A stretch of DNA of 64,000 bases from Hyalangium minutum (GTDB lineage: Bacteria; Myxococcota; Myxococcia; Myxococcales; Myxococcaceae), in NCBI RefSeq assembly GCF_000737315.1, contig NZ_JMCB01000013.1, positions 310,001-374,000 on the forward strand, written 5' to 3'. This document shows, piece after piece, positions 34,310 to 50,913 of this stretch; positions within the stretch are counted from its first letter, which is position 1; each line of letters begins with the position of its first letter. The translations under genes were made by a program, and so were the position numbers. A model generated the notes under the pieces. That model was not told the DNA's origin. It saw only the letters and a program-made list of their open reading frames with translations, and did not search any database.

Positions 34310-34649
34310 TGGTTTCTCCTTGCAAGGGTAAAGCAACCTTGCAAAGCCAAAATGAAAACGGAGTGCATGGCGTGCAAGAGCCTACTTCCACTCTCACCGG
34401 GCACTGAACTCCCTCCAGGCCCTGGGTACGTGTAAGGATTCAACTCCCTGCTGATCTCAGTTCACGGCACGTTGGAGTATCGTTTCCACCCGCATTGGGA
34501 AGCGGGGAACGTTCCAAGTCCTGGAATGATGGAGCGGCCGCCTACTCTTGTCCTCCACAGAACGGGTCAGGAGTTGTTGTGTTGAGCTCAATGCCTCTCT
34601 CTGCGACTCAGGGGCGGCAGTGACCCCCATCTGTGGAGGAATCAACCGC

Positions 34650-37600
34650 ATGCGCAGTGCCTTATCACCTCATGAGCGCAGGTCCTGTCGTTTACCCTCG
34701 AGAGCTCACATCATCTTGGCTGTGGCTGGTGTGGTGATGCTCTGGGGTTGCATGGATTCAGAACGCACTCCATCGTCTGCGCCAGTCAATCAATCCTATT
34801 CTCTGGTGACCATTGCCGACCCTGGCACGCTGCCAGCGGACACGGCGTTCATCAATGCGCCCGTTACGAGCACTGTCTATGTCGCCAAGACGGGCTGCCC
34901 GGGCCCCCAGGATGTCTGCCAGGAGTCCAACAACGGTATGACCCGGCAAACCGCCAAACCCCGAATCGATCTGGCCATTCCTCTGGTCCAGCCTGGCGGG
35001 GAGATACGCGTCTATCCCTCGGAGACCCCATACGAGGAGTATCTCTATATACCGCTGCAGCAGGCGGGCTCGTCGGCAACCCCCAAGTTCATCATCGGGG
35101 TGCCAGATGCCATGGGCAAGATGCCACGGATTGTGCCCAAATTTGTCGATGGCCGCTTCAGGTCCATCTTCAACCTGGAGACCTCCTACTGGATCATCAA
35201 AGGCGTGGACATTGATTGTATGGACCAGCGTGTCAGCGGCGTTGTCCCGCTGAGAGGAGACCACCTGGCCTTGCTGGACTCCGAGGTCCATCACTGCCGG
35301 CAATCCGCTGTGCTGGTGCGTGGCTCGAAGGACGTGGTGATTCGCAACAACGTGCTGCATCACAACCAGGATTTCCAGGGGGTGGATTCGGACCTTCGCT
35401 ATGACTCCAGCGGCGTGGATATGGAGTCATGGTTCCTGCGGGACGCCTCCAATGCGATCATCGTGAGCAGCATCACCCCCACGGAGCGAGTCCTTATCGA
35501 GCGGAATACGGCCTATGCCAACTCCGGTGATGGTGTTCAGTGTCAGGGAGGGGAAGCCCCAGGTGGGACATACTACCCGGAGATGAATTCACGCGATGTG
35601 ACCATCCGCGACAACCTCTTCCACGACAATCTCGAGAACGCCGTCGATATCAAGTCGTGCCTTCGTGTGTCGATTACGGGGAGCAATCAGTTCTACGGGT
35701 ATGATCATTCAGGACGCAATGGCGGGCGCTGTGGCGGTTCCGCGGTGATCGTGCACTTCAACGCATCCAAGGTCCTCGTCGAGGGGGCTCGCATCCACGA
35801 CAGCGGCATTGGCGTTGAGCTGGGAAGCGACCAGCTGGGAGCGGTGCAGGACATCATCATCCGCCGCAACTCCATCTACCGGATGAACCAAAACTACTCG
35901 CGCTGGGCGGCAGGGGATGCTCCGGGCGGGAGGACAGGGTACGAGTGGAAGGTGAACTGCGGTGACGGCATCAAGGTCAATCGCGCCCAGCGCGCCGAGA
36001 TCTACCACAACACGCTGGATAACCTGCTTCATTCCGGTATCAAAATCCGCTCCATCCTCGCGGATACGGAGACGGTGCGTGTCTGGAACAACATCATCTC
36101 GGACGTGAGCGGGCTCAACTACATCGATGAGACGCAGTTCCCTTCGACGTATCCGCTTCCCCCGAGCTACGTTCCGGCCCGCTATGGCCACGAGCATGGC
36201 GGATACCTGGACTACGACCGGTCCAGTTCCCTGTCGGGGTTGGTGAGCGAGTACAACCTCTTCCACAAGGGAGATGGGACTTCCTTGCTCTATCGCTACT
36301 GCCCGCCCTCGGGCTCTTGCACTCAGCAGAGCCTGGCGACGTTCCGCACGTCATCCAGTCTCGATCTGGCGCCCAACAGCCAGGAGACGCCTGCTAACTC
36401 CACCCTCTTCGTCGCTCTGCCTGATTCCAACGGCTACTTCACGCAATCCGGAACGCTCGCGCGGAACACCGCGCTGGTGGATGCTGGCAACTCCGGCCAG
36501 GACTGCGCGAGTGCTCCGGACAAGGGGGCGCTCGAGAGCGACTGCGCGCGGGAGTGGACCCCGTACTCCGCGCCCCTGAGTGCGTCGACGGGAGTGACCT
36601 CAGGCTCGGCTCCCTCTCTCCAGGTGGATGCTTCTGGCCTGCCCGTGGTCGCTTGGTCCGAGGCTGAAGGCGAGGCTCGTGCCATTCATGTGCGGCGCCT
36701 GGTGGGCGGAATCTGGCAGCCGATAGGAGATCCCCTGAGCGCGAGCACGGGGAGTGGTACGCACGCGGAGACTCCTCAGTTGGTGCTGAATGCTCAGGGC
36801 CATCCCGTGGTGGCATGGTCCGAGTCCAATGGCACGGGTGCCCAGGTCCATGTCTGGGCGTGGACCGGAAGCCAATGGACGCCGTACGGGGGAGGGCTCA
36901 GAGTGACCTCCTCCGGCTATGCGTTCAACCCGTCGCTGAAGCTCGATGCCTCGGGCGATCCCGTGGTCGCTTGGCGAGAGTCTCCCAATGGCCAGTATTA
37001 CAACGGGACCATTCACGTCAGCCGCTGGAACAACGGTTCCTGGAGCAGCGTGGGAGGGGCCGTGCTCTCCATGGGGGATGCCTTCGAGGCTCCTTCGCTC
37101 GAGATGGGTGGCGACGATGAGCCACGCGTGGCTTGGTCCGCCTTTAACGGCGTGGAATGGAGGATCTTCGTAGCGGGCTGGACTGGGACGGCGTGGCAAG
37201 CCGTCGGCTCGGACGGCATCAATGCGCTCACGGAGGTGGGGACTGGCGGTTCCTCACCCTCCCTGAAGATTGACGGTTCGGGGCGGCCGCTCGTCGCATT
37301 CAGTGAGTCCATGGCGAACGAGGACGAGACCTGGGTCTTCTTGTTCCGATGGAATGGCACCTCGTGGGACGACCTGGGCGGGAAGCTGAACGGTGATGTG
37401 GCGGGAGACCCCGACCTGTGGGAGCAAGGTAATTGGCCTGTGCTGGAATTGGATGGCGTCGGCAATGCGTACGTCGCCTACCGTTCTTCTTTCTCGGATT
37501 ATCGGAGCTCTCCCTACAGCCATTGGAGCACCGACTTCATCAAGGTGCGGGATGCTTCGACGGGGGCATGGACCACGCTCAGCTCCTGGTTCATCCCGGA

Positions 37601-37739
37601 CTCGGGACCGCCGCGCGCCTTCCGCGTCAGGGCGTCAGGGGAGCCCTTCATCGCCATGGAGAAGGTCACACAGCCATGGGTCCCGTACTCCAACGGGGTG
37701 AGCGGCATCGAGGTGACACATTGGGCTCCCTGGCTCTGA
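34650..37739 (+). CDS. Right-handed parallel beta-helix lipoprotein with a C-terminal 7-repeat propeller-like domain
   Basis: Lipobox LWGC; PbH1-type repeats (VVIRNNVLHHN, VTIRDNLFHDN, IYHNT); seven PSL..D..G.P.VAW.E repeats. The start is uncertain. Confidence 0.78.
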   Translation: MRSALSPHERRSCRLPSRAHIILAVAGVVMLWGCMDSERTPSSAPVNQSYSLVTIADPGTLPADTAFINAPVTSTVYVAKTGCPGPQDVCQESNNGMTRQTAKPRIDLAIPLVQPGGEIRVYPSETPYEEYLYIPLQQAGSSATPKFIIGVPDAMGKMPRIVPKFVDGRFRSIFNLETSYWIIKGVDIDCMDQRVSGVVPLRGDHLALLDSEVHHCRQSAVLVRGSKDVVIRNNVLHHNQDFQGVDSDLRYDSSGVDMESWFLRDASNAIIVSSITPTERVLIERNTAYANSGDGVQCQGGEAPGGTYYPEMNSRDVTIRDNLFHDNLENAVDIKSCLRVSITGSNQFYGYDHSGRNGGRCGGSAVIVHFNASKVLVEGARIHDSGIGVELGSDQLGAVQDIIIRRNSIYRMNQNYSRWAAGDAPGGRTGYEWKVNCGDGIKVNRAQRAEIYHNTLDNLLHSGIKIRSILADTETVRVWNNIISDVSGLNYIDETQFPSTYPLPPSYVPARYGHEHGGYLDYDRSSSLSGLVSEYNLFHKGDGTSLLYRYCPPSGSCTQQSLATFRTSSSLDLAPNSQETPANSTLFVALPDSNGYFTQSGTLARNTALVDAGNSGQDCASAPDKGALESDCAREWTPYSAPLSASTGVTSGSAPSLQVDASGLPVVAWSEAEGEARAIHVRRLVGGIWQPIGDPLSASTGSGTHAETPQLVLNAQGHPVVAWSESNGTGAQVHVWAWTGSQWTPYGGGLRVTSSGYAFNPSLKLDASGDPVVAWRESPNGQYYNGTIHVSRWNNGSWSSVGGAVLSMGDAFEAPSLEMGGDDEPRVAWSAFNGVEWRIFVAGWTGTAWQAVGSDGINALTEVGTGGSSPSLKIDGSGRPLVAFSESMANEDETWVFLFRWNGTSWDDLGGKLNGDVAGDPDLWEQGNWPVLELDGVGNAYVAYRSSFSDYRSSPYSHWSTDFIKVRDASTGAWTTLSSWFIPDSGPPRAFRVRASGEPFIAMEKVTQPWVPYSNGVSGIEVTHWAPWL

Positions 37740-37786: not shown

Positions 37787-37824
37787 GAGCCGAGGCCAGA
37801 AGGGGTGAGCTCTGGCCTCGGCTC
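37787..37824. terminator. Hairpin between convergent genes
   Basis: GAGCCGAGGCCAGA / TCTGGCCTCGGCTC, a perfect 14-bp stem. Confidence 0.65.
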
Positions 37825-37876
37825 TTGTCCACAGCGGGCGGCGTCCACGCTCGCCAGCGATCTCAGCCCAGGCCGA

Positions 37877-38665
37877 TTACCAGCCGCTCACAGGGGAGAT
37901 GGGCTGGATCACGCAGAAGGCTGCTCCCGTGGGATCCACGAGCACTGCCATGCGCCCATAGGGCGTGTCGAACGGCGGCGCCATCACCTGGCCGCCGAGC
38001 CCCTCCGCATTCTTCACCGTCGCGTCTGCGTCCGTGACGGCGAAGTAGACGTTCCAGTGCGAAGGCACCTCGGGCGGGAACTGCGCGGTCATCTGCATCG
38101 ACCCGAAGACCGTCGTCCCGTCCTTCTGCAGCGTCCAGTAGTCGATGCCGGGAGCATCCAGGCGCTTCTTCTCCAGCCCGAACACCTGCGTGTAGAACGC
38201 GTGGGCCTTGGCGAGGTCGCGCGTGTACACCTCGTGCCAGACCATGGCGCCGGTTTCTTCGATGACCTGCGCACCCTGGTGCCTCCGGCCCTGCCACACA
38301 CCGAAGTGCGCCCCGGTCGGATCGGCGAAGTACGCCATCCGGCCTTCCTCCATCACGTCCATCGGAGGGACCACCACTTTGCCGCCCGCCTCCGTAATCT
38401 TGCGGGCGATGGCGTCGGCGTCCTCGACGGCCAGGTAGAGGCTCCACATCGGAGGAAACGGCGAGCCCTCGCGCAGCTTGGCCAGGCCCGCGACGTTGCG
38501 GCCCCCGAGCTGCGCCATCGTATAGAACCCAGTGTTCGGATCGTCGCCGCCCACGAACGTCCACCCGAGCAGCTCGCCGTAGAACTTCCGCGCCTTGGCG
38601 GGATCCGGCGTCTGCAAATCGACCCAGGACACCGTCGAGGGAGCTGCCTTCTCACGCTTCGCCAT
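37877..38665 (-). CDS. Two-domain VOC/glyoxalase family protein
   Basis: WVDLQTPD...FYGELLGW; GRMAYFADPTGA and GRMAVLVDPTGA duplicated. Confidence 0.88.
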   Translation of the reverse strand: MAKREKAAPSTVSWVDLQTPDPAKARKFYGELLGWTFVGGDDPNTGFYTMAQLGGRNVAGLAKLREGSPFPPMWSLYLAVEDADAIARKITEAGGKVVVPPMDVMEEGRMAYFADPTGAHFGVWQGRRHQGAQVIEETGAMVWHEVYTRDLAKAHAFYTQVFGLEKKRLDAPGIDYWTLQKDGTTVFGSMQMTAQFPPEVPSHWNVYFAVTDADATVKNAEGLGGQVMAPPFDTPYGRMAVLVDPTGAAFCVIQPISPVSGW

Positions 38666-38852
38666 GCCTGCCTCCAGGTTCAGAAAGGGGGCGTCTGAAA
38701 CCCCCTGGGGCCTTCCAGGTTAGTCCTGAAATACTTCGTCACATTCACGAAACAATCGTGTCACGGCCTCTTGGCAGGGTGTCGCCTCGAAGCATCAGCA
38801 CCGGCAGGGCGCCGGTCCTGAAGCGGGACATCTGACCCCCGAGGAGAGCCGT

Positions 38853-40433
38853 ATGCACGGAGTTTCGCGACTGCGCTTGTTGGCCGCGCTCATGTTCTTC
38901 ACCGTCGCCTGTGGTGACGGCCGGCCCGAAGGCTGGACCGAGGAGTCGCACGGCAAGAAGGCCCAGCCCGCCTACGGCACTGTCTTTCCCTCGGATCAAG
39001 TTCAGCGGCTCGACATCGTCATCTCCGCCGCGGACTGGCAGGCGATGCAGGACGACATGACGGCCATGGTCGGCGCCTTCGGCTCGGGGGGCGGCCTGCC
39101 TGGCGGAGGAGGTGGCATGCCTGGCGGAGGAGGTGGCGCGCCTCCCGTGGAGCTGACGGCGGCCTGCCAGGACAAGGCAGAGGGCGAGGCCTGCACCGCG
39201 ACCTTCAATGGCACCACGTTCACGTCCACCTGCGGAAAGACCCCGGATGGGGCCACCCTGCTGTGCAGGCCGATGGGGGGACCAGGGGGGGGCGGCGGCG
39301 CTCCCGGCGGTGCTCCCGGAGGAGGGGGCGGCGGCGTGGATCTCATCCCGAACACGCCCATCTATGTGCCCTCGACGGTGATGTTCAACGGCAAGACGTG
39401 GTGGCACGTGGGCATCCGCTACAAGGGCAACTCCACGCTCTCGAGCGGCTGGCGCTCGGGCGTGAGCAAGCTGCCCTTCCGGCTCAACTTCGACAAGTTC
39501 GAGGACGAGCATCCCGAGATCGAGGGCCAGCACTTCTACGGCTTCAGCAAGCTCTCCCTCTCCAGCAACCAGGGCGATGTGTCGTACATCCGGGACCATG
39601 TCGCCTCGGATACGTTCCTCGCCGCCGGGGTGCCCGCAGCCCGTACTGGCTTCATGGCCGTGTATGTGGACCACGGCGAGGGGGCCCAGTACTTCGGGCT
39701 CTACACCGTCGCCGAGGATCCGCAGTCCTCGCTGCTCGACAGCCACTTCGGCAACCACGATGGCGCGCTCTATGAGGCGGACGGTGTGGGCGCCCGGTGG
39801 GGCACCTTCGACGAGGCCTCCTTCGAGGCGCAGTCGGATGCGGCCGAGCAGGGCTGGGAGAGCGTGCAGGCCGCCATCGCCGCGCTGAACGCCGACCGCA
39901 GTGACGCGGCGGCCTGGCGCGCGGGGCTTGAGGCGAGGCTGGACGTGGATGGCTTCCTGCAGTGGCTGGCCGTCAACACGGTGCTGATGAACTGGGACAG
40001 CTACGGTTCCATGCCGCACAACTACTACCTCTACGCGGACCCGACGGATGGGAACCGGCTGCACTGGATCACCTGGGATCACAACCTGTCCATGACCTCG
40101 CGCCAGGGGCTCTCGCTGACGCTCTCCGAGGTGACTCAGGACTGGCCCCTCATCCGCTACCTGATGGACGACCCGGTCTACAAGCCGCGCTACGAGCAGT
40201 ACGTGCGCGAGTCCGTTCAGGGCCCGTTGGCCGCGGCCACGATGAAGGAGCGCATGCAGCAGGCGCATGACCTCATCGCGCCCTGGGTCACCGGAGAGAA
40301 CGCCGAGGTGCAGGGCTTCACCTACACCAGCGCGGATCAATTCAATACCTCGCTCACCGGAACCGCGGGCCTCTTCAGCTTCGCCGAGCAGCGTGAGGCG
40401 GCCGTGCGGACCACCTTCGGTACCACCCCATGA
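38853..40433 (+). CDS. CotH kinase family lipoprotein
   Basis: Lipobox FTVAC, GIRYKGNS, KLPFRLNFDK, YFGLYT, NWDSY..MPHNYYLY and WDHNLS; Gly/Pro-rich inserts. Confidence 0.85.
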   Translation: MHGVSRLRLLAALMFFTVACGDGRPEGWTEESHGKKAQPAYGTVFPSDQVQRLDIVISAADWQAMQDDMTAMVGAFGSGGGLPGGGGGMPGGGGGAPPVELTAACQDKAEGEACTATFNGTTFTSTCGKTPDGATLLCRPMGGPGGGGGAPGGAPGGGGGGVDLIPNTPIYVPSTVMFNGKTWWHVGIRYKGNSTLSSGWRSGVSKLPFRLNFDKFEDEHPEIEGQHFYGFSKLSLSSNQGDVSYIRDHVASDTFLAAGVPAARTGFMAVYVDHGEGAQYFGLYTVAEDPQSSLLDSHFGNHDGALYEADGVGARWGTFDEASFEAQSDAAEQGWESVQAAIAALNADRSDAAAWRAGLEARLDVDGFLQWLAVNTVLMNWDSYGSMPHNYYLYADPTDGNRLHWITWDHNLSMTSRQGLSLTLSEVTQDWPLIRYLMDDPVYKPRYEQYVRESVQGPLAAATMKERMQQAHDLIAPWVTGENAEVQGFTYTSADQFNTSLTGTAGLFSFAEQREAAVRTTFGTTP

Positions 40434-41200
40434 ACGCGCTGGCCTGGTCAGGAATCTCTGCCATGGAGTGCCACTCACCGGAGTTGGATCATGAGCGGCG
40501 TTTCCATCCATCCGTCTCGGTGGTGGAAGCCTTCCTGAGCGCCGTGGGGCCTTTCACAGAGCCTCGGCGGTACGAGCTTGGCTACCCGCACGCCTTCACG
40601 CGCACGACGTACTTCGACACGGAAGAGCTGTCCCTGCTGTCCTCGAGGGGCACTGGCTCCGCGCAGCGCCTGCGGCTCCGGGAGTACGCCGGGGCGGTGG
40701 ATCTGGCGCAGCCTCCCGTCCTGACCGGCCAGCGGTTCCTCGAGGTGAAGGTGACGAGCGGGGAGCGGCGCATGAAGTCCCGCTGCCCGCTCTCGGGTGT
40801 GGAGGCGGAGGCGCTGCTGTCCGGCGCGCCTCTGCCCGAGGCGAGCGTCGCGGCGGAGCTGGTGCGGCGCCTCACCCCGGCTCCGGTCAAGCCGATGGTG
40901 ACGGCTTGGTACCGGCGCGTCACCCGGGTTACCTCCGACGAGCGGGTCCGCATCACCCTGGACGAGGATCTCACCTTTGCCCTGCCTCCGGCCCCGGGGG
41001 AGCCCGCGGCCCCCACGCGCCTGCTCCAGCGGGCTCCGTCGGCCCTGCTCGAGGTGAAGTGGCAGGCCCGCCTGCCGTACTGGCTCGAACGGGCGTTCGT
41101 GCCGCTGATGGCCTGCGAGACCCATGGCTCGAAGTTCGAGGAGGGAATGCGCGCGCTCTTCGGCGGAGCGCTCCCTCTTCCTCTCTCCAAAGCACGCTGA
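40430..41200 (+). CDS. VTC domain (CYTH-like, polyphosphate polymerase family) protein
   Basis: TTYFDT, RLRLREY, FLEVK, YRR, RITLD, LLEVK and SKF motif series. ATGA overlap with the CotH gene. Confidence 0.8.
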   Translation: MNALAWSGISAMECHSPELDHERRFHPSVSVVEAFLSAVGPFTEPRRYELGYPHAFTRTTYFDTEELSLLSSRGTGSAQRLRLREYAGAVDLAQPPVLTGQRFLEVKVTSGERRMKSRCPLSGVEAEALLSGAPLPEASVAAELVRRLTPAPVKPMVTAWYRRVTRVTSDERVRITLDEDLTFALPPAPGEPAAPTRLLQRAPSALLEVKWQARLPYWLERAFVPLMACETHGSKFEEGMRALFGGALPLPLSKAR

Positions 41201-41225
41201 GCTCACTTCCAAGGACTGTTTCCTC

Positions 41226-42407
41226 GTGCCTGCCTCTCTCTCTGTTCCCCGCCTGCTCCTCGCGGCGCTGCTGTTCTTCGGCCCTGCCGCTGGCGCCCAG
41301 GCCCGTTCCGAGACCGCTGCTCCCCCGCAGCAGGAGCCTGCGGCTCCCGCGACTCCGGAGCCTGTCCCCACCGTGGACACCCCCGATGACGCCATCCCCC
41401 CGGTGGCGGGCGATGGCGGCCTCGTGCTCCCCACGGCGATCGGCGAGGTGGTGGTGGGCGGCCGGGTCGATGTGCGCGAGACGCTCGAACATCCGCAGGG
41501 AGGCATCTGGGCCGGTGAGCTCACGATTCCCGCCGCGCGGCTCGAGCTCTCCTACCGGTGGAAGAAGCGCCTGCGCGCCGTGGTGGAGTTCGACGTCCGG
41601 GGCGAGATCAAGGATGCGTTCATCTGGCTGAAGATCGGCAAGGGCTTCTCCACCCGGGCGGGCCGCTTCAAGGTGCCCCTGTCTCTGGTGGAACTGGAGT
41701 CGGCCACGCGGCTGCCGGTCGTCCGCCGGGGCCTGCTGCGTGCCGTGCTGAACGACGCGCTGGGCCTCACGGGCCGGAGCGCGGGCGCGCAGCTGGAGTG
41801 GAAGTGCTCGCAGTGCACCCAGCAGCTCAAGGTGCAGGCGGGGGTGTGGCAGACGAGCGATCCGGACAACAAGGTCGCGCTGGAGCGAGGGCTCGGCCTC
41901 ATCCCGGCGATCCGAGGCTCCTATGAGCTCGAGAGCGTGGAGCTGGGAGCGTCCGCGCTCTATCAGCCCAAGGGCTCCAGCCCGGGCGGGGATGAGAGCA
42001 GCTGGATCGCCGGAGTCGATGCTCGGCACACGCTCTCGCTGAGCACGGGCGCGCTGCGCACCTGGGCCGAGGCCATGACGGGACGCTCGGCCCTCATCGG
42101 TGGCACGGGGAACATTCTCCTGGGCCGTGCGGTGAGCGCGTGGCGTCTGGGAGGAACCGCAGGCGGCCTGCCGTATGTGGAACCGTTCTTGATGCTCTCG
42201 GCGATGGATCCGGACCTCGACAGCCCGGATGACCTGCTGTGGGAGGGCGCGCTGGGCCTCAACGCCGGGCAGTGGCAGCGGTGGCGGATCCAAGCGCAGT
42301 TCGAAGTTCGCAAGGCCAGCGCGGGCGTGCCTCCCGTGCTCAAGGCCCTGGAAGAGAGCCTCGCTTCGCGGCGGGCCCTGCTGGTTCAACTGGAGGTGGG
42401 CTTCTAA
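41226..42407 (+). CDS. Outer-membrane porin, OprO/OprP-like
   Basis: Signal peptide, IKDAFIWL, GRFKVPLSL and a terminal LEVGF beta-signal. GTG start inferred. Confidence 0.65.
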   Translation: MPASLSVPRLLLAALLFFGPAAGAQARSETAAPPQQEPAAPATPEPVPTVDTPDDAIPPVAGDGGLVLPTAIGEVVVGGRVDVRETLEHPQGGIWAGELTIPAARLELSYRWKKRLRAVVEFDVRGEIKDAFIWLKIGKGFSTRAGRFKVPLSLVELESATRLPVVRRGLLRAVLNDALGLTGRSAGAQLEWKCSQCTQQLKVQAGVWQTSDPDNKVALERGLGLIPAIRGSYELESVELGASALYQPKGSSPGGDESSWIAGVDARHTLSLSTGALRTWAEAMTGRSALIGGTGNILLGRAVSAWRLGGTAGGLPYVEPFLMLSAMDPDLDSPDDLLWEGALGLNAGQWQRWRIQAQFEVRKASAGVPPVLKALEESLASRRALLVQLEVGF

Positions 42408-44086
42408 TGTTGATCGTGTTCGAGGGAATCGATGGGTCCGGGAAGACGACCCTCTCCAACCGGGTGGCCCAGGAACTGCGCCACGCGGGGCTGCGGGTCC
42501 GTCACGTCCGCGAGGGCGGGACGCTCGCGTCGACCGTCTCAGAGGATCTGCGGCGCTTCACGCGGGATCCTGCGCACCTGGCGCTCACGCCCACCGCCGA
42601 GCTGCTGCTCTATGCCGCGCGCGAGGCTCAGCTCCTGGAAGAGGTGACGCGCCCGGCGCTGGCCGAGCACGAGATCGTCATCACCGATCGCTTCCTCTAT
42701 ACCGCCGAGGTGTTGGCGCGGTGGGGGCGCGGTCTGCCGGAGGGCGTGGTGCGGCCGGTGGTCGAGGCGTCCGCGCGAGGCCTGACCCCCGACCGCGTCT
42801 TCCTCATGGACGTGGATCCCGCGCTGGCGCGGGCCCGCCGCCGTATTTCGAAGATCCTCGTTCCGAAGGTAGGCGCGCCCTCCCGGAAGGGGCTGGCGGG
42901 AGCCGGGCTGCAGGTGAGGCTGCGCTCGGGCTACCGCACCCTGGCGGCCGAGGCTCCCGAGCGGTGGACCCTGCTCGAGAACGCGGGAGTGACCCTCGAT
43001 CAGCTCGTTCAGCAGGTGGTCCAGGAGATCCTCCAGGCGCGCGCCGGCGCCGCTCCTTCGGCGCGCACGGGCCGCCCGCCCCCGTCCTCCGTCCGCTCGG
43101 TGGAGGAGGCACGCGCGCGGTTCCTCCAGCACATCGATACCTGGATGACGGAGGAGCCGCCCCTGGCCGCCTACTTCCTGTTGGGGATGGAGGGGGCAGA
43201 CATGATGGAGCGCCGCAAGCGCATGGCGGAGCGATGCCCGGAGCTGGTGGCGCACAGCCTCGCCGGTTGCTCGGACGAGGCCTCGTGGCAGCTCCGGCGG
43301 CAGCTCGTGGACACCGCTCCGAGGCAGGTGCTGGAGTCCCTCTCTCAGGAATTCGCGGATGCGCCGGAGGCGTGGGCGCTCCGGGAGAAGCTGATCGCGC
43401 TGTACCCCCGGGAGGTCGCGGTCTCGCTCAGTGGGCTCGACTCGGAGCAGGCCTGGCGCATGCGGGAGCACCTCTACTTCGCCTCGTGGGAGGGCGTGAT
43501 CACCTCCCTGGCGGGGCTCGACAGTCCGCGGGCGTGGGCCGATCGCCTGCGCTGGCTCTCGGATGCGGGCGGGGAAGAGGCGCTGGGGTTGGAGAACGTG
43601 GCCCGGACGGGGTGCCGCTCCATCCGAGGACTCGACGGCGAGCAGGCCTGGAGGTGGCGTGAGCGCGCCTGGGCCATCGCGCCGGATGCCGTGCTCCGCT
43701 CGCTGGCGGGGCTCACGAGCACGCGCTCCTGGGAACTCCGGGAGCAGCACGTGGCCCGCGCGCCTCGGGCCGTGCTGAGCACGCTCGATGGGCTGGACCA
43801 CTCTCGGGCGTGGGCGCTGCGCGAGTCCTTCGGCGCGCAGTGTGAAGAGGTGCTGGACTCCATCTTTGGCATGGAAGGCTCCGCGGCCTGGGGACTGCGC
43901 ACGGCGCTGGCGGACACGTGGCCCGCCACGACCGTGAGGAGCCTGGGCCCGCTGCTCCAGACGCCACGAGGCAGGGCGCTCGCCGAGCGGCTGCTGGCGA
44001 GCAACCCTCAAGACTTCGCTTTGCTGCGCCAGGCCGCCCGCGGCGCACCCGACACCTCTTTGGGAGGCCTCCATGCCACCGCTTGA
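42407..44086 (+). CDS. Thymidylate kinase-like P-loop domain fused to about nine 27-aa helical repeats
   Basis: IVFEGIDGSGKTT, ELLLYAAR, ITDRF and PDRVFLMDVDP, then SLxGLDSxxAWxLRE repeats. TAATG overlap with the porin gene. Confidence 0.82.
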   Translation: MLIVFEGIDGSGKTTLSNRVAQELRHAGLRVRHVREGGTLASTVSEDLRRFTRDPAHLALTPTAELLLYAAREAQLLEEVTRPALAEHEIVITDRFLYTAEVLARWGRGLPEGVVRPVVEASARGLTPDRVFLMDVDPALARARRRISKILVPKVGAPSRKGLAGAGLQVRLRSGYRTLAAEAPERWTLLENAGVTLDQLVQQVVQEILQARAGAAPSARTGRPPPSSVRSVEEARARFLQHIDTWMTEEPPLAAYFLLGMEGADMMERRKRMAERCPELVAHSLAGCSDEASWQLRRQLVDTAPRQVLESLSQEFADAPEAWALREKLIALYPREVAVSLSGLDSEQAWRMREHLYFASWEGVITSLAGLDSPRAWADRLRWLSDAGGEEALGLENVARTGCRSIRGLDGEQAWRWRERAWAIAPDAVLRSLAGLTSTRSWELREQHVARAPRAVLSTLDGLDHSRAWALRESFGAQCEEVLDSIFGMEGSAAWGLRTALADTWPATTVRSLGPLLQTPRGRALAERLLASNPQDFALLRQAARGAPDTSLGGLHATA

Positions 44087-44741
44087 GAACGTATGGCAGG
44101 GGCTCGACGTCGGGCCTCATGCGCTCACCACCTCTATGTTGTTGATGCGCTTCTCGATGGCCCTGGTGCTAGGGGCGTTCCTGGCCTACCGGCCGTGGCG
44201 CAAGATCCTGCCCAACGCGCCGCCGATCGTGCCGGAGACCGCCCACACGCATGTGCTGATCGCCGTGGCGGGCGCGGTGATGACGACGGTCATCGGGGAC
44301 AGCATGTCCCGGGCCTTTGGCCTGGTGGGGCTGGGAGGCTTTATCCGCTTCCGCTCGGGCATCAAGGACCCGCGGGATGCGGCGGCCATGTTCGTGATGA
44401 TCGGCGTGGGCATGGCGTGCGGGCTGGGCGCCGCGTCCGTGGCGGCCTGTGCGGCGGTGTTCTTCGGCGGAGTGCTGCTGGTGCTGGATGCGGTCAGCAA
44501 GCGGCGCATGGAGACGGTGCAGCTGTCGCTGGGGCTCGAGGACGTGGGCGCCGCCGTGCCGGCCCTGAAGGCACTGCATCCAGAAGCCCGCTTCCTCTCG
44601 CTCGAGCAGGAGCCGTCGTCCCCATCCGGCACCGTGCTCATTGAACTCCTCGTGCCCGCTCAGTCCGATGGGCTCGAGCTGCTCCAGGGGCTGCGCAAAG
44701 GCCTCCCCGGAGTCCAACGCGCGTCCATCGATCCAGGGTGA
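44073..44741 (+). CDS. DUF4956 family membrane protein
   Basis: VIGDSMSRAFGLVGLGGFIRFRSGIKDPRD...IGVGMACGLG. Confidence 0.82.
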   Translation: MPPLENVWQGLDVGPHALTTSMLLMRFSMALVLGAFLAYRPWRKILPNAPPIVPETAHTHVLIAVAGAVMTTVIGDSMSRAFGLVGLGGFIRFRSGIKDPRDAAAMFVMIGVGMACGLGAASVAACAAVFFGGVLLVLDAVSKRRMETVQLSLGLEDVGAAVPALKALHPEARFLSLEQEPSSPSGTVLIELLVPAQSDGLELLQGLRKGLPGVQRASIDPG

Positions 44742-44801
44742 AGACGCGGCCCCGTTCTGTGTCACTTGCCGCGCCCTCCGAGAGGGCGCTCAGGAGGTTG
44801 C

Positions 44802-45428
44802 ATGCTCCAGAAGCTGATGCCCAAGTCTGATGCGTTCTTCAACGACTTCGATAGCCAGTGCGCGGTGACGGTGGAAGGGACACGGCTGCTGCACGGGCTG
44901 ATGTGCGACTACCGCGATGTGTCCACCCGGGTGCAGGCCCTCAAGGAACTGGAGCACAAGGGGGACTCCGTGGCGCACGAGGCCTTCAACCGCCTGCACA
45001 AGGAGTTCATCACCCCGTTCGATCGGACGCAGATCCACAAGCTGCTGTCGCGCATCGACGACGTGCTGGACTTCACCAATGCGGCGGCAGCCCGGCTCCA
45101 CTATTACGAGATCCAGTCCACGCTGCCGGAGGCCACGGAGCTGTCACGGCTGCTGGTGCTGTGCGCGGAGAAGGTCCAGGAGGTGGTGTCGATGCTGCGG
45201 CTCATCAAGAAGCCGGAGCAGATCCTCGCTGGCTGCAAGGCCATCAAGCAGCTGGAGACCCAGGCGGACGAGACACTGCGCGCCGGCATGGGCCGGCTCT
45301 TCAAGAGCGGCGTGGACCACCTCACTGTCATCAAGTGGAAGGAGATCTACGATCTGCTCGAGAGCGCCACGGACCGGTGCCTCGATGTGGCCGATGTCAT
45401 CGAGGGCGTGGTCCTGGAGCACTCCTGA
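44802..45428 (+). CDS. DUF47 (PhoU-like phosphate transport regulator) protein
   Basis: LEHKGD, FITPFDRTQI, IDDVLD, LETQAD and WKEIYDLLESATDRC. GGAGG RBS. Confidence 0.88.
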   Translation: MLQKLMPKSDAFFNDFDSQCAVTVEGTRLLHGLMCDYRDVSTRVQALKELEHKGDSVAHEAFNRLHKEFITPFDRTQIHKLLSRIDDVLDFTNAAAARLHYYEIQSTLPEATELSRLLVLCAEKVQEVVSMLRLIKKPEQILAGCKAIKQLETQADETLRAGMGRLFKSGVDHLTVIKWKEIYDLLESATDRCLDVADVIEGVVLEHS

Positions 45429-45430
45429 GG

Positions 45431-47140
45431 TCAGGGTCCTCGCAGAGGTGAGCGGTCCAAGGCCTGCGCGAAGGCATCCTGATGACTGCCAGCGATGCAG
45501 AGCGGAATTCCCTCCAGGACGCCACAGCGCGCGCCGGCCTGTAGAAAGGGTGAGAGGTGCTCCGGCAGCACCACGTACGCCGTGTCCGCGGCGATCCCTT
45601 CCTTGGGAAGAGCGGCGCGGCACTCCTCGATCAAGGCGGTGGGAGGGCGTGCGGCATAGCCACTGTTGAAGGTGAGCTTGAGCCGGTACGCCGTGTAGGC
45701 CAGCGCGTTCACCAGCGGCTCCTCGTAGCGGCACGCCCACTGGACCTGAGGTGGGAAGAGCGAGAGGTGCTGGTACGTGCCTCTGAGGGTTTCCCACTCG
45801 GGGGCACGCAGACGGTGGAAGCGCGTCTGCACGCGCAGCGGGCTTCGGTCGGCGCGCCAGTCGTACGCTTGGAGGGCGAGCACGAGCCCCAGCACCGTGG
45901 CGCTCACTGCGGGCCGCTCGCGCCAAAGCCTTACCAGCAGCACCAGGGCCCCACAGAACAAGAGGTAGTGCAGCGGCCAGATGAAGCGCCCAGAGGCTCG
46001 GAACGCCGACGTCTGGCCCGAGAGTGGCGCGTACAGCTTCACCAGCTCCACCACGGGCTGTCCCAGCCACGTCACGCGCCAGGACAGGGCGTACACAGCG
46101 AGCCCCAGTCCCACGGCCAGTGCCGGTACCACGCGGCGCCAGGGGAGCGTGCGCGCCTCGCGGAAGTGCAGCGCTGCGCTGGCCAGAGTCAGGGCTACTA
46201 GCAGCAGCCCGCCCGCTCCCAGGAATCCGTAGCCCTCGCCCTGGCGCGGCATGGCGGGCAGGGTCGGCAGCAGCTTTGACCAGCCCATGGGGTTGATGAA
46301 CGTGGCGAGGTCCGACGAGAAGTCGCCGAAGCCCTCCGCGCCCAGCTCGGTGCCGATGAAGTAGCCGAAGGAGGAGAAGAGCAGGGCATTCATGACCACG
46401 ATGGCGCCCATCGTCACCGCGACCCGCATGGGGCTCAGCACCCGGCTCAATGCCAGCCGCACGCCCAGTGCCAGCGTGAGAGGGAAGAGCATGGCCACCC
46501 AGTAAGGGTGGGTCCCAGCGCTGACGGCATTGAAGAAGGCCGACAGTGCGAGGAGGCGCCAGGCCGTGCGCGCATCCGGAGCAGCGCGCAAGTTGAGCCA
46601 CAGCAGCGCCACCAGCAGCCAGTGTGTGCACAGGGCAGGGTGGCCAAAGCGAGCGCCGAGCACGGGCGCCAGCGCTACCAGGACACCTCCCAGCACCTGG
46701 TGGATCGCGCGAGGCGACACGGTCTCCACCAACCGCGCGCCGAAATAGCCCATCAGCGCGAAGCTCAGGCCCATCCACGGACCGATGTACTGGAAGTCTA
46801 CCGGCAGGAGTCCCGAGAGCGGCTTGAGCAGCACGGCCGCCCACGGGATGCTGTCGGTGAGCGCCACCGAGGTGCCGTACGGGTAGAAGTGGTTGGGCAG
46901 CGAGCCGAGCGGGAAGGTCCAGGGCGCATTGCGGAAGAAGAGCCAGCCCACGGCGTTCATGGCCCAGTCTTCCCGCATCAACCAGTCAAGGCGTGTGGGC
47001 CGCAGTGCCACCGCGCCCCCGAGCCACAGGAACCAGCCCAGCCCGCCGAGGGCGGCCAGCCACCGAGGCAGGTGGCTCCGCAACGCAGGGGCCACCGTGG
47101 GCGTAGGACTGGCAGGGGAGGGCGCGGACGGCTCGGACAT
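45431..47140 (-). CDS. DUF6311-like polytopic membrane protein (possible GT-C-type transferase)
   Basis: Many TM segments with WLFFRNAPWTFP, ALTDSIP, EGYGFLGAG and FRASGRFIWP. Confidence 0.68.
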   Translation of the reverse strand: MSEPSAPSPASPTPTVAPALRSHLPRWLAALGGLGWFLWLGGAVALRPTRLDWLMREDWAMNAVGWLFFRNAPWTFPLGSLPNHFYPYGTSVALTDSIPWAAVLLKPLSGLLPVDFQYIGPWMGLSFALMGYFGARLVETVSPRAIHQVLGGVLVALAPVLGARFGHPALCTHWLLVALLWLNLRAAPDARTAWRLLALSAFFNAVSAGTHPYWVAMLFPLTLALGVRLALSRVLSPMRVAVTMGAIVVMNALLFSSFGYFIGTELGAEGFGDFSSDLATFINPMGWSKLLPTLPAMPRQGEGYGFLGAGGLLLVALTLASAALHFREARTLPWRRVVPALAVGLGLAVYALSWRVTWLGQPVVELVKLYAPLSGQTSAFRASGRFIWPLHYLLFCGALVLLVRLWRERPAVSATVLGLVLALQAYDWRADRSPLRVQTRFHRLRAPEWETLRGTYQHLSLFPPQVQWACRYEEPLVNALAYTAYRLKLTFNSGYAARPPTALIEECRAALPKEGIAADTAYVVLPEHLSPFLQAGARCGVLEGIPLCIAGSHQDAFAQALDRSPLRGP

Positions 47141-47153
47141 GGGCGGAACAGGC

Positions 47154-47570
47154 TCATACTCCAGATGCGCTACCCTCTGAAGGCCGTAGCGCACTGCCCG
47201 TGGAGGTGCTCAGGAAGGCGCGCCATTCCCGCTGCCCGGCGCCGGGCTCGGACATCTCGGCGATGGTCCGGCAGATCTTGTCTGCACCTTCGAGCCCCGT
47301 GGCCTCACCGAAGCGCAAGTCCCCACCGAAGCCATTCTGGCTGCCCGAGAGCTGACGCATGGCCTCGAGGCTCGTCACGAAGAAGCTGAAGGGCCGGCTC
47401 CCGTCCGAAGTCCCTCCGTCAGAGCCGCCGCCGTCGGTGGAACCATCGGCCCCTGCATCACCTTCCGTATCGCTGCCACCCGGGTCCGTGTCCGTGTCCG
47501 AAGTGTCCGGACTGCAGGCGGAGATGCAGACGCCCAGGGCCACGAGTGCAACGCAGAGTCTGTTCTTCAT
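47154..47570 (-). pseudogene. C-terminally truncated lipoprotein
   Basis: Lipobox ISAC, an acidic Gly linker, then SFFVTS...GFGGDLRFG...GADKICR...WRAFLSTS. The frame ends shortly after, at the point where I recall homologs continuing. Confidence 0.5.
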
Positions 47571-47641
47571 GATGAGTGCTCCCTCCCTCACGACGGTGCG
47601 ACGAAGCTCTCGAGGAGCTTTTCTGCTGCGGAGGGGGCCGC

Positions 47642-48921
47642 TCAGAGTTGACGGCCCAGGGCTCGGGCCAGCTCGGTACGGGCGGTGGCGATCTGGTACT
47701 CGGCCTGGACGCGCTGTGACGCGGCGTTCGTCGCCTGCACCTGGGCGTCTCCCAGCTCGATGATGTTGCCCACGCCTGCCGTGTAGCGGCCCTCGGCCAG
47801 GCGCAGGCGCTCGCGGGCATTGGCCAGGGCCTCCTCGGCGGCGGCCAAGCTCTCTCGGGAAGAGTGGACGGAGAGCTGTGCGCGCTCCACCTCGAGCCGG
47901 ACCTGTTGCCGGAGCGTGTCCCGCTGCGCCTGGAGGCTGGTCAGGGTGGCTTCCTGCTCACGGACCTGGGCGCGTGTGATCCCGCCCTGGAACAGGGGCC
48001 AACTGAGGACGAGCTGGCCGGTCAGGTTCCACTGGGTCTGGCTCAGGTTCGTCCCCGAGTCCGAGCCATTCACCGCGGCCGACAGGCTGGGCCAGTACCC
48101 CCGCCGTGTGGCGGTCAGCTGAAGCTCCTGCGCGCGGAGCTGCGCGGCACTGGCCGCCAGATCCGGCCGGTTCGTCAGCGCCGAGTCCACGAGGGTGTCC
48201 AGCGGCTGCTCCTCGCCCTCCACGGCGGCGGTGGTCACCTCCTGCACCGTGTAGTCCGTGGCTCCCTCCAAGCCCATGGCCTGGTTGAGCTGGGCCTTGC
48301 TGGTGGCGTAGGTGGTCTGAGCCTGGATGAGCTGGAGCCGTGCGTTGGCGAGCGAGGTCCGCTGCTGGAGCAGATCGATCTCCGGCCGCGTGCCCACCTC
48401 CACCTGGGCCTGCACCTGGCGCAGGTGGGTCTCCTCGTTCTGCAGCGTCTCTTTCGCCACCTGGACGAGGGACTGCTGGGCGAGCACGCTGAAGTAGGCG
48501 GTGCGGACGTTGGCCTGCACCTCCAGCTGTGTCTGCTCCGCCGAGGAGGCCTGAGCCTCCGCCGAGCTCTGGGACGAGCGCCACCGGCCGCTCGTCTGCC
48601 CGAAGTCGTAGAGGAGCTGGCTCGCGGTGGCACCCACGCTGAAGCCGCTGCCGCGGGGCGAGGTGGTCCCTGGGTCCACGGTGTCAGTGCCCGTCGAGCC
48701 CGACGTGGAGCGCTGATACGAGGCACTGGCGTTCACCTGGGGCAGCAGGGAGGCCTTGCGCTGATCCGCTCGCGCGCGGGCTGCCTCGGTTTCGGCCTGG
48801 GCCTGCCGCAGCTGGGGCTGGCGGGACTGGGCGTTCTGCAGTGCCTCTTCAAGGGAGAGCACGCTCTCGGCCCGGGCGGGGAGCGCGGCACAGAGCAGGG
48901 CAATGAGGAGGAGCGGGCGCA

Positions 48922-48925
<4 letters not shown>
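47642..48925 (-). CDS. TolC family outer-membrane efflux protein
   Basis: LLPQVNASAS, QLLYDFG and AEGRYTAGVGNIIELGDAQ. ATGA overlap with the permease gene. Confidence 0.88.
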
Positions 48926-50150
<1,225 letters not shown>

Positions 50151-50154
<4 letters not shown>

Positions 50155-50894
50155 GACAGCGCCTCTTCCAGTTCGGGGATCACGGCGGGCTGCGCCACCT
50201 GCCGCTGGTCCGAGCGGATCCGGCCATCACGCACCACCACCACGCGATCGGTGTGGCTGGCGATGTCGGGTTCGTGTGTGACGAGGATGATGGTGAGTCC
50301 CTCACTGCGCAGCTCCTGGAAGAGGGCCATCACCTCGATGCTGGTGCGCGAGTCCAGGTTGCCGGTGGGCTCGTCGGCGAGGATGACGGGAGGCCGGTTC
50401 ACCAGCGCCCGTGCGATGGCCACACGCTGCTGCTGGCCACCGGAGAGCTGGCGCGGGTGGTGATCCAGGCGAGCGCCCAGGCCCACCCGCTCGAGCGCCT
50501 CTTTCGCCCGCTGCCGCCGCTCACGGGCAGGGACGCCCGCGTAGAGCAGAGGCAACTCCACGTTCTCCAGGGCCGAGGTGCGCGCCAGCAGGTTGAAGCT
50601 CTGGAAGACGAAGCCCAGGGTGCGGTTGCGCAGGCTCGCCAGGGCGTTGCGATCCAGCCCCGAGACGTCCACGCCCTGCAGCAGGTACTCCCCCGCGGTG
50701 GGCCGGTCCAGGCAGCCCAGGATGTTCATCAGCGTGGACTTGCCGGAGCCGCTGGAGCCCATGATGGCGACGAAGTCCCCTGCGTCCACGGTGAAGTCCA
50801 CGCCGCGCAGGGCGGCGACCTCCACGTCTCCCGTCTGATAGATCTTGCTCACGCCGCTCAGCTCGATGAGCGGCGGTTGGCCGTCGTGTCTCAT
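50151..50894 (-). CDS. MacB/LolD-like ABC ATP-binding protein
   Basis: GSSGSGKS, LSGGQQQR and ILADEPTGNLD. Confidence 0.92.
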
Positions 50895-50913
50895 TGGCTC
50901 TCTCCTCCACGCC

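Follow-up and report, generated by a model that had tools for sequence, protein, structure and literature searches.

A Vtc4-like enzyme and a thymidylate kinase-like partner as the centre of a candidate envelope-spanning polyphosphate system in Hyalangium minutum and other Myxococcota

Introduction

Why would a bacterium encode an enzyme of the Vtc4 type, and why between a lipoprotein kinase and an outer-membrane porin? The question is raised by six genes of Hyalangium minutum (assembly GCF_000737315.1, contig NZ_JMCB01000013.1, positions 310,001 to 374,000 of the forward strand; these 64,000 nucleotides are the window, to which all coordinates below refer). The open reading frame (ORF) listing and the translation of the window place the genes at 38853-45428, all on the + strand and in one direction, in the order CotH lipoprotein kinase, VTC-domain enzyme, Porin_O_P-like barrel, fusion of a thymidylate kinase (TMK)-like kinase with a repeat domain, DUF4956/MgtC-like membrane protein and DUF47 protein. 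To our knowledge, PPK1 and PPK2 are the enzymes credited with polyphosphate (polyP) synthesis in bacteria, polymerases of the VTC type count as eukaryotic, and none of the bacterial VTC-domain proteins has been subjected to an assay. A first-pass annotation of the window had put the CotH kinase at the centre of the locus, as the consumer of VTC-made polyP. Our analysis leads us, tentatively, to a phosphate-regulated, envelope-spanning polyP system that is centred on the Vtc4-type enzyme and its kinase partner, with CotH as a lineage-specific extracytoplasmic effector.

The VTC protein

The second gene (40430-41200, + strand; its start overlaps the CotH stop in ATGA) encodes a soluble, Vtc4-like triphosphate-tunnel enzyme of 256 amino acids (aa), which matches the Pfam family VTC (PF09359) at 1.9e-20. 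A family profile made from 30 diverse members, when matched to the proteins of the PDB, found yeast Vtc4 over the whole catalytic domain (2.7e-21), then Vtc2 (7e-7) and Vtc3 (5e-5), and no other protein at E<=0.01. Cryo-electron microscopy of yeast VTC, which couples polyP synthesis to membrane transit, identified K200, R264, R266, K281, R361, K458, S457 and Y359 as triphosphate ligands and E426 as the Mn2+ ligand, with K458 alone being different in the inactive Vtc2/3, which have Ile or Leu there (bioRxiv 10.1101/2023.01.27.525886). Eight of these nine positions are identical in the window protein (R82=R264, R84=R266, K107=K281, Y161=Y359, R163=R361, E208=E426, S234=S457 and K235=K458), and the ninth, K200, is conservatively replaced by R24, a position at which many relatives have Lys and the family as a whole has either Arg or Lys. 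K235, the counterpart of the diagnostic K458, is invariant in the 30 diverse members, as are most of the other ligand positions. By sequence, the window protein has a competent Vtc4-type triphosphate/Mn2+ active site, and both the residues and the profile, which is closest to Vtc4, bear out the first-pass assignment of the domain to the Vtc4 kind. Pfam and hydrophobicity analysis of the 256 aa revealed no SPX domain, no Vtc1-type transmembrane (TM) domain and no hydrophobic segment.

The kinase-solenoid fusion

The fourth gene (42407-44086, + strand) encodes a 559-aa protein in which Pfam, NCBIfam and AlphaFold delineate a TMK-like P-loop kinase (residues 1 to about 212) and an alpha-solenoid (about 232-550). 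The kinase matches Pfam Thymidylate_kin at 2.1e-19 and, as the only addition that NCBIfam made in the operon, TIGR00041 (dTMP kinase), at a borderline 84.9 bits against a cut-off of 83.25. Structure comparison of the AlphaFold model (pLDDT 91, pTM 0.87) gave TM-scores of 0.82-0.90 between its N-terminal domain and TMK structures, and all 27 PDB sequence matches at E<=0.001 are TMKs. An analogy with PPK2, drawn before, finds no support in the sequence, as the matches are to TMK and no PPK2 family appears among the Pfam matches at E<=0.01.

Across the fusion family, the P-loop G7-T15, the DR motif (D94, R95) and the LID arginines R142, R144 and R145 are invariant, and the LID carries an insert peculiar to the family, PSRKGLxGxG. 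In the TMKs of S. aureus and T. thermophilus, the Tyr and Gln of the AYQG motif and the Arg that follows the stacking Phe have roles in acceptor recognition. AYQG aligns to L103-A104-R105-W106 of the fusion, where all members of the family have the Leu and nearly all the Ala, and the Arg is replaced by Glu or Asp; the residues that recognise a thymine/deoxyribose acceptor are not found. Because the catalytic residues are invariant while the AYQG motif is replaced, the protein seems to be an active kinase, with dTMP probably no longer its acceptor. Public sources name the whole family (42407-44086 in the window and the homologues P0053-P0172) 'dTMP kinase'. The name is probably an over-annotation, since the acceptor motif is replaced and the gene is linked to VTC, as described below.

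The solenoid consists of eight AWxxR repeats of about 27 residues and has no relative in the PDB, the best Foldseek match (E=0.016, TM <0.35) reflecting a generic ARM/HEAT/Pumilio-like likeness. We considered it as a polyP-binding groove and rejected this, as its net charge is not positive (-8 in the window protein, family median +1). The AWxxR repeat recurs several times per protein in four other, larger proteins (P0363, P0366, P0386 and P0394; 956-2428 aa) with transglutaminase-core and HEAT domains.

The fusion has more than 1070 homologues, of which the best 120 are all full-length (46-96% identity), and an exhaustive profile search returned 192 clusters at 50% identity (E<=1e-30). When one genome per species was scanned with the C-terminal part, 140 species were found to carry the fusion, the best 80 of them all Myxococcota (Myxococcia, Polyangia, Kofleriaceae and Haliangiales). 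Genomes of the Myxococcus xanthus type are missing from these best 80 of 140 species matches, and for this reason the gene, which is patchy within the family, is unlikely to be a housekeeping tmk.

Gene neighbourhoods across Myxococcota

Hidden Markov models (HMMs) made from the window proteins were iterated on the six-frame ORFs of all loci, which allowed us to map 84 loci. Components were counted in the 51 loci whose sequence extends 6 kb or more to either side of the kinase fusion. VTC occurs in 45 of them, DUF4956 and the porin in 36 each, a lipoprotein of about 230 aa without a Pfam match (Lp) in 33, CotH in 21, a protein of about 700 aa of the Pfam family Na_Pi_cotrans (Na/Pi) in 17 and DUF47 in seven. 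The kinase fusion, which had been treated as peripheral in the first-pass annotation, is the gene most tightly linked to VTC across the Myxococcota loci.

This linkage persists through at least four gene orders that retain the same partners. The order CotH-VTC-porin-kinase-DUF4956, with or without DUF47, is found in 16 loci, mostly of Myxococcia, VTC-kinase-DUF4956-Lp in 17 and porin-kinase-Lp-VTC-Na/Pi in 16; the remainder include mixed orders such as kinase-DUF4956-Lp-VTC-Na/Pi-porin-CotH. The porin adjoins the fusion in 53 of the 84 loci, and a distant relative of the fusion (50% identity) lies in the order VTC-kinase fusion-DUF4956, without CotH or porin. Among the 71 loci that contain VTC, 38 have DUF4956 only, 24 Na/Pi only, six both and three neither (one or the other in 68), and, similarly, 17 have CotH only, 44 Lp only, five both and five neither (one or the other in 66). 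CotH is thus present in 22 of the 71, and 21 of these 22 also have the porin. The conserved core consists of VTC and the TMK-repeat fusion, together with a partner in the inner membrane (DUF4956 or the Na/Pi-like protein) and a lipoprotein (CotH or Lp); most loci have a porin as well. That the linkage is kept despite so much rearrangement is strong evidence of shared function.

Joint conservation of all six genes across Myxococcota, which the first-pass annotation had named as a check, therefore stands in part: at least 16 other loci, from at least seven genera and with different flanks, have the block of five genes CotH-VTC-porin-TMK fusion-DUF4956, but CotH is confined to 22 of 71 VTC loci, most others having the other lipoprotein instead, and DUF47 to seven of 84. 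The view of CotH as the centre of the system and of DUF47 as one of its parts, rather than a rare add-on, has accordingly been given up.

Several variants of the core deserve mention. Lp, a predicted lipoprotein, carries the motifs PWKVGNTWTYKVTD ... VTVPAGTF ... GVGKV.E; it was found in 58 loci (for example L005:10440-11228, L086:2738-3448, L028:12015-12764 and L055:11577-12305), adjoins the kinase fusion or VTC genes in most Polyangia-type loci and is almost mutually exclusive with CotH. In Polyangiaceae-type loci, VTC overlaps the start of the Na_Pi_cotrans gene (L034:12863-15031, L055:13050-15227, L087:10851-12914, L086:4301-4725), whose product there largely replaces DUF4956 as the inner-membrane partner. 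Myxococcus sp. RHSTA-1-4 has a porin-kinase-DUF4956 locus (L012) without CotH or VTC, and the VTC of this strain (P0016) is on another contig, so the cluster may be split in its genome. No VTC-kinase fusion protein was seen among the longer relatives, plasmids yielded no useful relatives of VTC or DUF4956, and the matches listed for a wider VTC profile aimed at other phyla stayed within Myxococcota-type sequences; one contig labelled Verrucomicrobiota carries VTC in the Polyangia-type gene order.

Operon structure and regulation

The six co-directional genes and their three overlapping junctions were found at the coordinates given by the first-pass annotation, and an HMM check with Pfam matched all six proteins to the families it had named. 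CotH and VTC overlap by four nt (ATGA, 40430-40433), the porin and kinase fusion genes by one nt (TAATG, 42405-42409) and the kinase fusion and DUF4956 genes by 14 nt (44073-44086). In the three other genera whose gene calls we read (Stigmatella aurantiaca, Melittangium boletus and Corallococcus caeni), the order CotH-VTC-porin-kinase fusion-DUF4956 is found between unrelated flanking genes, and the same 4-nt, 1-nt and 14-nt overlaps recur. The porin most likely starts at GTG 41226 (393 aa) rather than at ATG 41124, because AAGGA precedes this codon, a signal peptide ending in FGPAAGAQA results and homologues have 386-405 aa; this leaves a gap of 25 nt after VTC. Likewise, DUF47 most likely starts at ATG 44802 (208 aa) and not at TTG 44766, since GGAGG lies upstream and the length matches that in Corallococcus, giving a gap of 60 nt after DUF4956. 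The G+C content of the block (65-72%) is like that of the surrounding DNA.

Upstream of the block is a divergent glyoxalase gene (37877-38665, - strand) and downstream a convergent gene for a DUF6311 membrane protein, so the six genes are bounded on both sides. One transcription unit is the best explanation of the arrangement, because the junction overlaps recur in three other genera and a single conserved element lies upstream. An ORF at 37805-38698 (+) lies antisense to the glyoxalase gene and was discarded as spurious, one example of the many false ORFs that this G+C-rich DNA yields.

The upstream element is a Pho-box-like direct repeat at 38737-38764 (+ strand), CGTCAC-N17-GTCAC, in which GTCAC, GAAAC and GTCAC follow each other at 11-bp phasing, 89-116 bp 5' of the CotH start. 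The pattern is unique in the window, where 0.06 matches would be expected by chance, and stands out as a phylogenetic footprint in 11 of 12 aligned regions upstream of CotH. Thirteen related loci of the CotH-first gene order have one copy each, always just 5' of CotH, and it is absent elsewhere in the 87 loci fetched. Direct repeats at 11-bp phasing are typical of sites for PhoB/OmpR-type regulators, and the repeat is a candidate response-regulator site. Its resemblance to PHO-box cores, CTGTCAT in E. coli and GTTCACC in Streptomyces (PMC4415409), suggests that the operon may be under phosphate control. Between the repeat and the CotH start lies a 14-nt inverted repeat (38792-38824; GCATCAGCACCGGC / GCCGGTCCTGAAGC, 5-nt loop), which is partly conserved in Hyalangium-like loci. 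Scans for promoters, terminators and Rfam families gave nothing above chance, and a sigma-54 promoter picked out by eye near 38770 was dropped because its -12 element and spacing do not fit. In about 20 loci of the VTC-kinase-DUF4956-Lp order (L005:11213-14445 and about 19 others), genes for a response regulator of the sigma-54 type and for a sensor histidine kinase are found convergent, just downstream, and may be dedicated regulators of these clusters.

CotH, porin and membrane proteins

The first gene (38853-40433, + strand) encodes a CotH-family atypical kinase of 526 aa (Pfam CotH 9.9e-58, domain at 188-515). It is a predicted lipoprotein, with a signal peptide and a lipobox (FTVAC|G, Gly at +2) that is conserved in homologues, followed by Gly-rich linkers, a small Cys-containing module and the CotH domain. 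In B. subtilis CotH, D228 and D251 are both required for catalysis, and characterised CotH uses ATP (PMC7821199). The window protein aligns to B. cereus CotH (5jd9), and its D382 and D409 fall on an Asp pair that in B. cereus is spaced by 23 residues, the same spacing as between D228 and D251. Among the 22 cluster-linked CotH homologues, D382 is kept in 20, N390 in 21 and D409 in 20. No CotB/CotG-like gene was found in the operon.

The third gene (41226-42407, + strand) encodes a 393-aa outer-membrane beta-barrel with a signal peptide, a distant member of Porin_O_P that matches the Pfam model at about 2.8e-7 (2.4e-7 to 2.8e-7; 30.5-30.8 bits against a cut-off of 20.9) over some 110 of its 370 positions. 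The model is matched by nine of 19 members of the porin family, which forms a remote branch. Because the porin has no detectable similarity to solved structures, even by profile, the OprO/OprP likeness seen in the first-pass annotation is weak, and phosphate selectivity can be suggested only faintly.

The fifth gene (44073-44741, + strand) encodes, according to Pfam, a DUF4956/MgtC-like inner-membrane protein of 222 aa with four to five TM helices (hydrophobic segments 20-39, 61-79 and 102-143) and a C-terminal soluble domain of about 75 aa. It matches DUF4956 at 2e-8 and MgtC at 4e-7 (30.7 bits, just under the cut-off), and the two models are matched by 12 and 10 of 12 family members, respectively. 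The family shares an invariant motif, AFGLxGLGxFxRFRSGxxDxRD, and the protein has no sequence match in the PDB, even by profile.

The last gene (44802-45428, + strand), with its own GGAGG ribosome-binding site, encodes a 208-aa DUF47/PhoU_div protein (Pfam PhoU_div 1.3e-21, covering 204 of 214 model positions). It is lineage-variable and, in six of the seven related loci that have it, lies at the operon end as it does here. Neither the ORF listing nor the annotated flanking genes show a PiT transporter, the usual neighbour of DUF47, near it.

The flanking genes at about 34.5-50 kb encode a beta-helix/BNR protein, the glyoxalase, the DUF6311 protein and TolC/MacB-type efflux proteins. Upstream of the operon are two large secreted-type proteins, a 1097-aa Kelch/PKD/Ig-domain protein (27509-30802, +) and a 1063-aa right-handed beta-helix/BNR protein (34548-37739, +); the Stigmatella cluster also has a Kelch/CBM96 protein upstream (L001:5398-7068). 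Downstream, on the - strand (45431-52218), the DUF6311 protein is followed by an efflux system (TolC-like OEP, MacB-type permease and HlyD-type adaptor), and then by a HAMP histidine kinase (52266-53750). None of these downstream genes is kept beside the cluster in other genera. There was no pel-type match in the flanks at about 34.5-50 kb or among the ORFs at 23.6-34 and 51-61 kb (the first ~23 kb of the window being unannotated).

Discussion

Partners are predicted in every compartment of the cell envelope: VTC and the kinase fusion in the cytoplasm, DUF4956 in the inner membrane, CotH as a lipoprotein and the porin in the outer membrane. Two cytoplasmic enzymes, a protein of the inner membrane, a lipoprotein and a barrel of the outer membrane together point to a process that spans the envelope and involves phosphate. 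The link to phosphate, already suspected in the first-pass annotation, is borne out by the context, namely the O/P-family porin, DUF47, the Na/Pi-like genes of relatives and the Pho-box-like repeat. We therefore favour, as a tentative reading, a phosphate-regulated polyP system built on the Vtc4-type enzyme and the kinase fusion. In such a system, the VTC enzyme, at the inner membrane, would build polyP from the gamma-phosphate of an NTP. The kinase fusion would act as a nucleotide-using subunit that no longer accepts dTMP and could prime the reaction, regenerate nucleotide or regulate, with its solenoid perhaps serving as a docking scaffold. DUF4956 would anchor the cytoplasmic enzymes and may give the product passage, the O/P-type porin might offer phosphate anions a route through the outer membrane, and CotH would be an extracytoplasmic effector specific to Myxococcia and not part of the core. 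Expression would probably respond to phosphate through a regulator of the PhoB/PhoP type.

A number of points weigh against this reading. Sequence cannot tell a polymerase from a triphosphatase, and the bacterial protein is without the SPX and TM domains that Vtc4 has. DUF4956 bears no relation to the Vtc1-type channel and, as it is absent from about a third of the loci, cannot be a universal conduit. The charge of the solenoid offers no electrostatic support for polyP binding, the porin has no PDB match at E<=10 as a single sequence or by profile, the OprP and OprO chains included, and the Pho-box interpretation rests on resemblance only. In S. intermedius, deletion of each gene of a related CotH-VTC-DUF4956-type trio left Pel production and aggregation unaffected (bioRxiv 10.1101/2024.04.20.589940). 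As to the direction of flux, export, for which yeast VTC is the model, has a competitor in uptake and storage, to which the Na/Pi-type partner points.

A system of scavenging and storage with inward flux only is the first alternative, and one that we consider unlikely but worth keeping in sight. Here, the porin would admit phosphate, pyrophosphate or polyP, the lipoprotein would bind or process it in the periplasm, uptake would follow at the inner membrane and VTC would make polyP as a cytoplasmic sink, with no export. The Polyangiaceae loci fit this, as the overlap of the VTC gene with the ~700-aa Na_Pi_cotrans gene probably couples the two translationally, and so do the O/P family membership of the porin, the DUF47/PhoU_div gene at the end of the window operon, the Pho-box-like repeat 5' of it and the fact that the bacterial VTC protein is soluble, without a channel domain of its own. 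However, neither the window locus nor any of the VTC-kinase-DUF4956-Lp class has a recognisable phosphate importer, the CotH kinase and the TMK-like fusion are left unexplained, and the one VTC characterised so far transports its product out of the cytoplasm.

It is rather improbable that no polyP is made at all, with the tunnel enzyme being a tripolyphosphatase, an NTP-triphosphatase or a cyclase-like signalling enzyme and the fusion a genuine dTMP/NMP kinase, the two adjusting nucleotide or energy balance together with an MgtC-like regulator. Among bacterial triphosphate-tunnel enzymes, most of those characterised are indeed hydrolases, and the fusion does reach the TIGR00041 cut-off (84.9 against 83.25). 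MgtC proteins, moreover, regulate ATP synthase and PhoR and transport nothing (summarised in bioRxiv 10.1101/2024.04.20.589940). Yet it is the VTC family in particular to which the window protein belongs, the Lys that marks active Vtc4 is retained, the thymine/deoxyribose motif of the kinase has been replaced, and the linkage to a porin, lipoproteins and Na/Pi-type transporters would find no explanation.

The model of the first-pass annotation, in which VTC-made polyP is moved over the inner membrane by DUF4956 to serve the lipoprotein CotH as phosphoryl donor for the phosphorylation of envelope proteins where ATP is absent, now seems to us quite improbable. In its favour are the conserved lipoprotein nature of CotH with its catalytic Asp residues intact, its translational coupling to VTC (the ATGA overlap in four genera) and the company that CotH, VTC and DUF4956 keep in streptococci, clostridia and bifidobacteria, where CotH is secreted too. 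CotH is missing, however, from 49 of the 71 VTC loci and therefore cannot be the purpose of the core, and there is no evidence that DUF4956 transports anything. We also know of no CotH-fold kinase that uses polyP. Since most related loci are without CotH and ATP is the donor that characterised CotH uses (PMC7821199), polyP as a CotH donor carries little weight. We would give only a slim chance to the fullest version of such ideas, a third bacterial polyP route besides PPK1 and PPK2, in which a Vtc4-like polymerase and an altered TMK-like kinase would send polyP by way of DUF4956 or the Na/Pi-like protein, the lipoprotein and then the O/P-type porin, through the envelope, to act in the periplasm or at the surface as donor for exported CotH, in Myxococcota and, as a simpler trio, in many Gram-positives.

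There is equally little to commend a surface-polymer module, in which the trio of CotH, VTC and DUF4956 would act on an exopolysaccharide or on a polymer of the spore or cell surface, by decorating or regulating it, with CotH as a glycan or matrix-protein kinase and the TMK-like enzyme as a supplier of nucleotide precursors. The contiguity of the trio with pel operons in Gram-positives (PMC7112168), its place beside glycosyltransferase and HEAT-repeat genes in C. perfringens NELoc-2 (PMC2879425; PMC11677781) and the beta-helix/BNR and DUF6311 membrane proteins that flank the window operon would all agree with this. On the other hand, no polysaccharide synthase gene is conserved beside the cluster in the 84 Myxococcota loci, where flanks vary between genera, the trio deletions in S. 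intermedius were without effect on Pel, and the dTMP-recognition motif of the kinase is lost. Finally, chance adjacency of a housekeeping tmk to unrelated envelope genes, which the public annotation of the fusion as 'dTMP kinase' might suggest, is effectively refuted by the neighbourhood census, given that the linkage survives shuffling of gene order across two classes of Myxococcota, that the junction overlaps recur in other genera and that an M. xanthus-type genome is missing from the best 80 of 140 species matches.

The envelope-spanning polyP system that we favour would have consequences beyond this locus. If the enzyme makes polyP, it would be a new bacterial polyP synthase, DUF4956 and a family of more than 1000 'dTMP kinases' would gain a function, and the finding would bear on the phosphoryl donor of exported CotH kinases, which are widespread in non-sporulating bacteria. 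If it does not, a likely systematic mis-annotation would be corrected and a conserved envelope module of Myxococcota defined. The operon makes a bacterial VTC-type polyP pathway directly testable, and the locus provides a genetically tractable setting, as myxobacteria have both developmental and phosphate-starvation phenotypes.

Comparison with known systems

Yeast VTC shares with the window locus the Pfam family, eight tunnel residues (R264, R266, K281, Y359, R361, E426, S457 and K458) and a genetically coupled membrane protein. The window protein differs in being without SPX and Vtc1-type TM domains, and its membrane partner is DUF4956/MgtC-like or, in relatives, Na/Pi-cotransporter-like; the Myxococcota form adds a TMK-like kinase-solenoid partner, a lipoprotein and an outer-membrane porin.

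The individual partners likewise combine familiar and unfamiliar features. The window CotH shares the fold family, both catalytic Asp positions and the HNY motif with the Ser/Thr spore-coat kinase CotH of Bacillus, but it is a Gram-negative envelope lipoprotein with extra N-terminal modules, and no CotB/CotG-like substrates are encoded nearby. The kinase fusion resembles bacterial Tmk in its fold, P-loop, DR(F) motif and LID arginines and departs from it in the replaced AYQG, the basic LID insert PSRKGLxGxG, the C-terminal solenoid of 330 aa and a context of VTC rather than of DNA precursors; from PPK2, the polyP-using member of the TMK fold, it is set apart by giving no match to the PPK2 family of Pfam. 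The DUF4956 protein has the TM region and small C-terminal domain of the MgtC family and a weak Pfam MgtC match, whereas DUF4956 matches better, its RFRSGxxDxRD motif is its own and its context is VTC and not mgtB. The porin passes the threshold of Porin_O_P, the family of the phosphate- and pyrophosphate-selective OprO and OprP, but only about 110 of 370 model positions are matched and there is no detectable similarity to the OprP/OprO chains in the PDB.

Closest to the window locus as a whole are the Gram-positive trios. That VTC, DUF4956 and CotH are neighbours elsewhere, with their role there uncharacterised, had been noted in the first-pass annotation, and three reports confirm it (PMC7112168; bioRxiv 10.1101/2024.04.20.589940; PMC2879425). 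A CotH-like kinase, a 'poly-phosphate polymerase', DUF4956 and DUF4832 are contiguous with the pel operons of streptococci, clostridia and bifidobacteria (Whitfield et al., PMC7112168). In S. intermedius, the products of SIR_1592-1594 are a CotH that is secreted, an enzyme resembling Vtc4 and an MgtC-like protein with four TM helices and an ACT domain, and the study found the trio only inside pel operons (bioRxiv 10.1101/2024.04.20.589940). NELoc-2 of C. perfringens contains two VTC genes, genes for two membrane proteins of about 225 aa, CotH and a HEAT-repeat protein (PMC2879425; PMC11677781). In the literature that we searched, no paper pairs DUF4956 with VTC by name and none describes the Myxococcota form with kinase fusion and porin. 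As in the window, the three families are adjacent in the Gram-positive trios, CotH is exported and the DUF4956 protein has four TM helices and a C-terminal domain. The window locus differs in belonging to a diderm bacterium, in having no adjacent pel operon and in adding the TMK-solenoid fusion, the porin and DUF47, and CotH is absent in most of its Myxococcota relatives. The CotH-VTC-DUF4956 trio is thus already known and unexplained, and the Myxococcota version brings new elements: it places the trio in a double-membraned phylum outside the pel context, gives it a TMK-like kinase-solenoid partner and an arm of porin and lipoprotein, alternates its inner-membrane protein with a Na/Pi-type transporter and sets a Pho-box-like element in front of it.

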